Assembly (NCBI GenBank): GCA_002269645.1
Contig: NIVC01002281.1
Span: 123,325 to 187,324 of the forward strand
Length of the DNA stretch: 64,000 bases
Reading direction: 5' to 3'
From: Macrostomum lignano
Taxonomy: Eukaryota
Shown one piece after another: positions 53,601 through 56,600 of this stretch. Every line of letters begins with the position of its first letter. Position 1 is the first letter of the stretch. Under the pieces are notes generated by a model. The model saw only the letters and a list, made by a program, of their open reading frames with translations. It searched no databases and was not told the origin of the DNA. The translations under genes were made by a program, and so were the position numbers.

Positions 53601-56600
53601 AAACCAAAAAAGTGGAAAGCTTACAATTTATGCTTAAAAATAAACTTTTCATCATTCTTTTAGCTTAACATTAACACTAACTTTTTTCTATATGGCGAAA
53701 TCTAAAAATTGGGGGAAGTTTTATGAAAATTCTTTCTTTGGCAATTTGAAAGCATTTAAAAATTTCCTGCATACATGCCACGGTGATACATGTTTTAGTG
53801 TAATTACATTGTTCTTCGTCGCTTAATAAGCATACAGTAAGCATCTGAGTTGGAAGCTGGGTAACACATTGGAATTCCCATAAGGTTGGAAAATTGCATT
53901 TTACTCAGCTTCTACTAAAGTGATTTGGAAAATTCTTTTTTTCCTACATACACGCCGCAATGATACATGTTTTAGTGTAATTTCATTGTTCTTTGTTGCT
54001 TACAAAGCATACAGGAAGCATTTGATTTGGATGCCGGGTTCACATTTTCTGGTACCATTTTTTACCCAAAATTTTCAGGTCTAAATATAGGCATATCACA
54101 AACACTAATACTATGCAAGTTGATATTTAAATGAAAGAAAATAACTTAGATTATTTTGCAACAAGGAATTAGTGGTATATTTACTTTTAGAGAAAGATGT
54201 TCGCTGGCAAACTTTGCGCTTTAAATTAGTATGAATTTTCTAGAGTTTATGTGGTTTTAGAAAAACTTTGAAATCCTTAGAAAGACTTCATCTTTTTGAA
54301 TAAAATAAAAAGTAAAACACATTTTACTTTCTGTTTTGTAAGTAGTAAAACATTAGCCTTCTCCTAAGGCCTACAAGTTTTAAAATTAATTGTTTATTAT
54401 TGAAAAAAAAGTGAAACAAAAAATTGCAAATCAGTTAACTTGGACTTTTAAAATGCTTTTTAGTGGTTTTTTTATTTATTCAACGATGTATAGCATGAAA
54501 ACAATAGTTTTTATCTAGAACTATTTTTAAAGACCTATCTGTCTTTCAAAAAGCTTTTTAGATACATTACCTTCTATCAAATGTCCACAGATTTGTTTTA
54601 CCATTTTATCCCACGTTTTTGGATTTCGCCATATGATTTTAGAAAGTGCACGCCAGTTGTGTATACACATTACTATGCAGGGCCCCTCCTGATTCTTTTA
54701 CAAAATTGATAATCGTATAACTCATTTTGAATGCATGGCGAATCTAGGAAAACACATTTGTTATAATACATATAATTTTCATAATATTTTACGCAAACTA
54801 ATTTTTGTTTAAACTAGCAGTAAATTTTAGTATAAATAGAAGCATTTTTGGCAGAGGAAAGACCAACCTCGTGCATTGCAGTTCCTTAAGAAAGAAAGCC
54901 AGTATTGAATAGTAAGAGTTCCAAGTAAATGTTATTAAAGATTGATTGAGAGTTATTTATTTGCATAAGTAAAAGTTAAGTAGGCTGAAGCATATACAGT
55001 ATATACTAATGAAAAGTGGAAATAGTAAGAGACTATGAAGTAGATCCTAAATCAATACATGTAAGAATAACTGGAGGCTGTGACCCTCTGATCTTGGTAA
55101 CATCCAGGACTGAAAATAGATACAATACATATACCAATAAGCCAATATACCTTTTAGGCCAAATTACTAGTAGAACACTATTAGAATAACAGTAAATGCT
55201 ACTAGAAATACAGAAGAATGATACTCGTAAGGGCTAGATAGTATTCTAAGAATAGTTGACAAATCAAATAATCAGACTTATACTCAGAATAAATTAGAAT
55301 TATTTTTAGAAACATTTCTCAGACTTATTCTAAGATAATTACTCATAATTTATTAAAAGAATAGTCTTGGTGTTAGCTACTAGCATTTAGAACATTTAAT
55401 ATAGAAAGTATAGCCCTAGTACAACTCAGTAACAGCTTTAGGATAATTCATAAAGACAGGGAAATAATATGTAGTACAACTTGGTGGCATTGCTAGAATA
55501 GCTAAGAGGGAAACAAGACCCCTGTTACAACTTTGGTAGAAGTGGTGGGATTTCATATTGTATGGGAACACCACTAATACATTACTTTTTTAGGAATAAT
55601 ACATGCCAATTGTATAATACCTAACTTTTGGCATACAAGGCCAATGCATACCCAAATTTTTGGGCATAATATTACATGATCTAGAATGTGACATATCAAG
55701 TATACCAAGAATTGCAAATGTGACTTTGTAATGTACACCATAATTTCAAAATTATCCCACCTTACTTTTGAGTTGCAACAACAAAGGACCTTTTTACTAT
55801 TGTAACATTTATATAGGGGGCCTATGCAATTTTGTTTGGATATAATATTTTATTACATTAAAAAAGTGTCATGTCTATTACTTCTTGATAAAAACTTGCA
55901 ATTACACAAAGTAAAAATAAGCTTTTCTAATTTATTTAGAAATATTTTGACCAAATAAAATAAATTTATTTGAAATCATTTTTAGGCCTAGTTAAAAAAT
56001 TTTCAGGCATAGTTCTAGTTTACTTTGCAATATTATTTCATAGTTATACTTTACTTCGCGATATTATTTTTATGTGTTTTTTTGCATTTACATAGCATAT
56101 TCTGTATTTATACCCAAACCACAACCCTTTCAGCTTAATTTGCAAAATGGCCGGCCACCTAGCTACCCCAACATCAAGGGAACCTGGGCCCTTGCCAAGA
56201 GGCGCCTGCGCGCAATGCATGGTACAAGTGATGCACTCTTGAGAGTCATCTCGAAGAGTATATCTGGCGCCGCCTATACCCAAACAATGTATTCGGCATC
56301 ATGCTTTACTGGGCTTCCATGTATTAGCCTGTTGAAGTGACTTGGCAACTTCAACTGACTGTTTTTCTGACTGAACCTGGTAACCAGGTTAAGCTGAACC
56401 TGGAAAGTGATAAAAACAGGGTGAAATAATTTAGCGAAAGGCAAAATAATATCGCAAAGTAAACTAGAACTATGCCAATTTTCATTTTTAGAATATCTAA
56501 AATACATTTTTGGAATTTATGGGAGAGGGGTAAAGAAGGATTGCCAAATTTGCTTACCTAGCTTTTATACACAAATGTATGCCAATGGACTTATATTGCA

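Follow-up and report, generated by a model that had tools for sequence, protein, structure and literature searches.

A probable internally deleted Merlin element in intron 1 of the Macrostomum lignano PRPS gene, present in all three PRPS loci of the assembly

The Merlin superfamily of DNA transposons reportedly goes back to Feschotte, in 2004. Its members are defined by terminal inverted repeats (TIRs; 24-462 bp) with a terminal 5'-GG, by a target site duplication (TSD) of 8 or 9 bp and by a transposase of the DDE_Tnp_IS1595 type, and the transposases are related to bacterial IS1016/IS1595 (PMC8101967). Merlin was known from flatworms before, in the form of Merlin1_SM of the planarian Schmidtea mediterranea (PMC8101967). 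The 471-bp element analysed here lies in the window, by which we mean the whole stretch of 64,000 nucleotides that was studied, in the first intron of the gene for ribose-phosphate pyrophosphokinase (PRPS) of Macrostomum lignano. This flatworm serves as a model for regeneration and transgenesis, and its genome is very repeat-rich. Set against the definition of the superfamily, the element has TIRs of 33 nt with a terminal GG and a perfect TSD of 8 bp; the PF12762 domain of the transposase can be recognized for the surviving C-terminal tail only, through transitive homology. An autonomous Merlin would have an intact DDE triad in an ORF of ~300-340 aa. Here both Asp regions are deleted and the Glu position is occupied by Lys in 3/3 copies, which makes the element non-autonomous. 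We consider it very probable that this is an internally deleted, non-autonomous Merlin copy which kept both TIRs, which all three PRPS loci of the assembly carry, and which was inserted before the recent whole-genome duplication and has decayed neutrally.

The host gene was delimited by a tblastn search with human PRPS1, which matched the minus strand at 56782-56663 (exon 1), 51970-51674 (exon 2) and 51235-50684 (exon 3). Exon 1 spans 56782-56661 on that strand and exon 2 starts at 51956; the spliced product of 318 aa was 100% identical to M. lignano BOX15_Mlig021117g2 in a homology search. Since these exon limits enclose the element, it falls inside intron 1, where an earlier note on this DNA had placed it. 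It lies ~176 nt downstream of the exon-1 splice donor, with the transposase remnant antisense to PRPS. The features are as follows.

51957-56660, minus strand: intron 1 of PRPS, with the donor GT at 56660-56659.
55998-56005, no strand: left copy of the TSD, AATTTTCA, read directly from the sequence and identical to 56477-56484.
56006-56038, plus strand: 5' TIR, 33 nt, starting with GG; the pair is 97% complementary, with 0 chance matches expected.
56039-56069, plus strand: subterminal repeat, in which the inner 31 nt of the TIR recur in tandem (87% identity).
56070-56127, plus strand: non-coding spacer holding the internal deletion junction; Merlin homology begins only at ~56128.
56128-56327, plus strand: C-terminal Merlin (DDE_Tnp_IS1595) transposase remnant of ~66 codons, with the native stop at 56325-56327.
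56328-56443, plus strand: 3' untranslated and subterminal region; the repeat search finds a partial TIR-like motif at 56422-56438.
56444-56476, minus strand: 3' TIR, 33 nt, ending with CC on the plus strand (repeat search, 23-mer count).
56477-56484, no strand: right copy of the TSD, AATTTTCA, by direct reading.

The two TIR arms, located by a repeat search of the window, are complementary at 32/33 positions and read GGCATAGTTCTAGTTTACTTTGC(A/G)ATATTATTT, the element beginning with GGCATAG and ending with CTATGCC. The terminal 23-mer GGCATAGTTCTAGTTTACTTTGC has two exact copies in the 64 kb, one per strand, where shuffled sequences lead one to expect 0.00, and by this 23-mer the window holds a single copy of the element (n = 1). 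Besides the tandem copy next to the 5' TIR, further partial copies of the TIR are found at 56132-56148 (17 nt) and, inverted, at 56422-56438. In the diverged paralogue described below, the tandem copy matches the TIR at 30/31 positions by a hand count from the alignment; it is likely to be an extra transposase-binding site. The segment 56372-56388 is rearranged in that paralogue and is thus not conserved. The inverted repeats with their (A/G) mismatch, the subterminal partial repeats and the perfect 8-bp duplication had all been read from the letters in the earlier note, and the repeat search, the 23-mer count and direct inspection bore these readings out.

What is left of the transposase was recognized through its relatives. 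A phmmer search with the reconstructed peptide (frame 1 from 56170, then the +2 frame up to the stop) against 1.84 billion cluster representatives returned 54 matches with E<1e-3, the best at 1.4e-12 with 51% identity. In these proteins, full-length ones of ~240-340 aa among them, the alignment covers the extreme C-terminus, and PF12762 (DDE_Tnp_IS1595) was above its gathering threshold in 10/10 long matches scanned. A profile search gave 412 matches; all 120 of those listed carry PF12762 as a precomputed annotation, the named ones among them are all animal (Nymphon, Octopus, Hydra and Biomphalaria included), and the closest of those listed, P0176, is 65% identical to the peptide. An independent HMM built from eleven relatives, with the window sequence left out, was searched against a six-frame translation of the whole 64 kb. 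It matched at 56170-56244 (iE 2.6e-6) and 56235-56330 (iE 5.5e-8) and nowhere else in the window; in particular, no match was found upstream of 56170. Direct alignment with Merlin transposases extends the homology from ~56128, where FQLNLQNG faces NHxLNFVDP, to the native stop. The proposal of a Merlin/IS1595-ISXO2-type C-terminus is thereby well founded. About 250 N-terminal codons are gone, the start codon and both catalytic Asp residues included. The codon AAG (Lys) at 56176-56178 aligns with the glutamate of the NT(V/I)EGxW motif, the third residue of the DDE triad, where 10/11 aligned Merlin transposases have Glu; the lysine at the catalytic position, pointed out before, is thus real, and the invariant K seven residues downstream is retained. 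The Lys codon is common to all three PRPS-locus copies and predates their split, and the source copy may already have carried it.

A direct link to the domain model, which the earlier note had recommended looking for, was not obtained. Neither the reconstructed peptide nor the intact ORFs of 84 and 90 aa from the other two loci matched any Pfam model, DDE_Tnp_IS1595 included, even at E<=10, because only ~35 residues of the domain remain; membership in the family consequently rests on transitive homology via full-length relatives. The only match of the intact ORF was to the C-terminal end of the NCBIfam profile transpos_IS1595 (NF033547), with E=0.054 and 13.4 bits for a cutoff of 75. The best plasmid matches of the peptide by tblastn were IS1595/ISAcra1 transposases at E~2-3, which is not significant alone. 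Where the match falls and how it is oriented agree with the bacterial family, at scores below threshold. That the element is a deletion derivative of an autonomous one is suggested by comparison with relatives that are at most 65% identical.

The peptide had originally been reconstructed across one frameshift at ~56240. The two-frame reading does hold for the window; the frameshift itself, as a feature of the element, probably does not. The break is a 1-bp gap, a missing T, in the T run at 56238-56240, where the window contig has CTCTTGAG; the two other loci, with CTCTTTGAG (L003) and CTCTTCGAG (L002), read through and contain uninterrupted ORFs of 84 and 90 codons, respectively, down to the native stop, with a tail that includes SDALFESHL(E/K) and, later, a V/A variation. 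A comparison of the window with L003 over 17.7 kb (46293-64000) showed 7 mismatches and 37 gap openings, mostly of 1 bp and many of them in mononucleotide runs, and in 17/17 gaps between 52995 and 58123 the bases are missing from the window contig. This pattern suggests uncorrected long-read errors in the assembly. As the frameshift is private to this contig and sits among many 1-bp homopolymer gaps, its most likely cause is a homopolymer error in the long-read consensus rather than a mutation.

Three contigs of assembly GCA_002269645.1 encode exactly this PRPS protein: the window contig (L001), L002 and L003. In a 1.5-kb test segment, L003 was 99.9% and L002 95.8% identical to the window, gaps counted. 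M. lignano is a recent neopolyploid with three paralogous genome copies that differ by ~2% (PMC10733133; PMC5704211), the subgenome divergence being ~2% after a recent whole-genome duplication (PMC10733133). The 176 mismatches between the window and L002 over 9.2 kb (1.9%) fit this published figure. The element itself differs at 18 positions out of 471 bp (3.8%), and the adjacent intron at ~3.2%. A stretch of ~1.1 kb of PRPS intron 1 (52756-53889) is without counterpart in L002 and makes up most of the 864-bp difference in gene span; it may be another insertion or deletion that differs between the subgenomes.

The element occupies the same position, in the same orientation, in all three PRPS loci. 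An empty site, which had been proposed as a test of polymorphism, was looked for among these three loci; all are occupied, and the insertion is not polymorphic among the assembly copies. Because all PRPS loci carry it, including a paralogue diverged by ~2-4%, the comparison is most simply read as a single insertion that took place before the paralogues or subgenomes split, i.e. before the recent genome duplication. The earlier description of a young insertion is, as written, unsupported, given that the same insertion is found in loci of which one is 1.9% diverged over 9.2 kb. The simplest restatement is that the insertion was recent when the duplication took place, its copies having diverged neutrally since.

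Much of that divergence involves CpG. Between the window (53889-63024) and L002, mismatches affect 6.6% of CpG sites versus 1.56% of other sites, a 4.3-fold excess, and 40/44 CpG mismatches are transitions. Observed CpG amounts to 0.28 of the expected in intron 1 and to 0.65 over the whole window. These figures are consistent with CpG hypermutability at this flatworm locus. The single mismatch between the TIR arms can be viewed in the same light: at 56029 (TIR position 24), the 5' arm of the window shows a CpG-to-CpA change where L002 has G. The arms of the window thus carry A (5') and G (3'), whereas those of L002 carry G (5') and A (3'), a pattern that two independent CpG transitions from a GCG ancestor would account for. 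We infer that the ancestral TIR was perfect.

One observation could be held against a single insertion. The TSD is perfect in both versions, and its first position (55998 and 56477) is A on both sides in the window and in L003 and G on both sides in L002, that is, two copies of AATTTTCA versus two copies of GATTTTCA. If there was one insertion, two parallel G/A substitutions are needed, an outcome for which we roughly estimate P~0.003-0.005, given the local divergence. One could instead envision two independent insertions of one non-autonomous Merlin family, hitting an identical site in two subgenomes that had already diverged and each time duplicating the local A- or G-variant of the target. 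If true, Merlin would have been active recently, and with near site-specific targeting, in a species used for transgenesis. However, the two copies agree in position, orientation, deletion structure and Lys codon, and the divergence of the element matches that of the neighbouring intron. Moreover, the 3' TSD base lies in a CpG (CC|G), a context in which mismatches are ~4 times commoner between the paralogues (the 5' TSD base is not in a CpG), and the apparent swap at TIR position 24 is likewise explained by two CpG transitions. Considering that reinsertion at exactly the same site has a very low prior probability, we regard independent insertions as quite improbable and favor a single event preceding the duplication.

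The short ORF raises a different issue, namely whether a C-terminal transposase fragment has been retained, and possibly expressed, under selection. The ORF is open to its native stop in both L003 and L002, and the remnant of the window is separated from that of L002 by 3 synonymous and 3 non-synonymous changes, for a nominal dN/dS of ~0.3. Six substitutions are, however, too few to separate constraint from neutrality; there is no homologous start codon, two of the three catalytic residues are gone, and the divergence equals that of the surrounding intron. In exact look-ups, which covered the Logan assemblies, neither of two ORFs of the window that overlap the element (88 aa and 77 aa) was on record as a called gene. 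Domestication of the fragment thus appears even less probable than repeated insertion. Least credible of all is an origin outside Merlin, be it in another superfamily with 8-bp TSDs such as hAT, in contaminating bacterial IS1595 DNA or in a chance inverted repeat. It is true that hAT elements also make 8-bp TSDs and that the direct similarity to bacterial IS1595 is weak. We rejected these possibilities nonetheless: every match scanned or Pfam-annotated, among those listed, belongs to PF12762 and none to hAT; on three separate contigs, its surroundings are an intron of a spliced animal gene; and no TIR match is expected by chance.

How the non-autonomous Merlin copy came to be in the intron can be pictured from what is established for DDE transposons of the cut-and-paste type. 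A full-length Merlin transposase, acting in trans, would have bound the TIRs and the subterminal repeats, cut the element out and integrated it at a target cleaved with an 8-bp stagger, repair of which would have generated the AATTTTCA duplication. As for the internal deletion, abortive gap repair of a full-length copy is its probable origin. After the genome duplication, the copies would have undergone neutral decay, mostly through CpG transitions, leaving what now appears to be a passive intronic relic that would encode nothing functional and has no evident function today.

The near-perfect termini had also been taken as a sign of a recent autonomous partner, and none came to light. Among the matches listed, no protein in the collections searched is more than 65% identical to the peptide, and Macrostomum is absent among the named protein matches. 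A word-indexed protein search with the peptide, the reach of which we estimate at relatives above roughly 65-70% identity, gave no candidates, and a scan of metagenome contigs for the exact TIR 23-mer returned 0 matches. The sources of the best relatives sampled are metagenome or Logan read assemblies and unrelated animals. The contig that encodes P0176 (L004) is 1090 bp long, too short to show termini; on that of P0017 (L006), both arms begin with GGCTA and no clear TSD is visible; and the contig of a third, close relative (L005) is degenerate. None of these three contigs has DNA similarity to the ends of the M. lignano element.

Elsewhere in the window, a possible second Merlin transposase relic, far more decayed, lies at 34756-34870 on the plus strand. 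It reads NQLYFMETNDLTIYINTI up to a stop and, after a frame shift, LAYSKAKSKAIHSTFNAL, resembling NHxLxFVDPNDPTxHTNTVEG and WAxxKAKFxAMHGT; tblastn with the relative P0003 gave E=0.008, with co-linear matches from P0011 and P0021. The independent HMM did not match this segment, and TIRs were not found there. The notion that it is an older copy of the 471-bp element was rejected, as it shows neither significant DNA similarity nor an HMM match. The window is also crowded with long minisatellite arrays (19919-24075, 45689-47717, 16300-17888, 39155-40684, 41504-43056 and others), with units and copy numbers such as 49 bp x85, 28 bp x72, 32 bp x50, 31 bp x48 and 23 bp x67. Strand composition is strongly skewed in the 49-bp array (GC skew +0.39, AT skew -0.49). 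A low-complexity array of the TCTCC/CTCTCC type at 63033-63630 gives rise, on both strands, to long spurious ORFs that contain SPLL and EERG repeats.

The result adds a curated Merlin remnant to the M. lignano repeat catalogue and has little significance beyond annotation. The insertion provides a dated marker, shared by the paralogous copies that the recent whole-genome duplication left behind. Two points are of some practical value: a homopolymer error in the assembly most likely explains the frameshift, and paralogue divergence at this locus is dominated by CpG transitions. An intact partner with the same TIRs, if present, would be of modest interest as an endogenous transposon tool; nothing here shows that one exists.

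Among the papers searched, we found none that links Merlin elements to Macrostomum lignano; as far as we could find, the superfamily is apparently undescribed in this species, and the element is an ordinary Merlin remnant. Compared with the superfamily at large, it keeps only the last ~66 codons of the transposase, with the catalytic E replaced by K. The closest of the database proteins listed is 65% identical over the peptide, and the M. lignano element thus represents a distinct family. With the non-autonomous, internally deleted or MITE-like copies of other cut-and-paste transposons it shares the preservation of termini and TSD together with loss of most of the ORF, and its mobility, like theirs, would depend on a transposase provided in trans. 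With the bacterial IS1595 family (IS1016, ISXO2, ISAcra1) it has in common the fold family (PF12762, NF033547) and 8-bp TSDs, whereas the direct similarity is not significant (E=0.054; E~2-3) and the M. lignano element resides in an animal intron. The nearest relatives of the remnant are the Merlin transposases of animals rather than bacterial IS1595.
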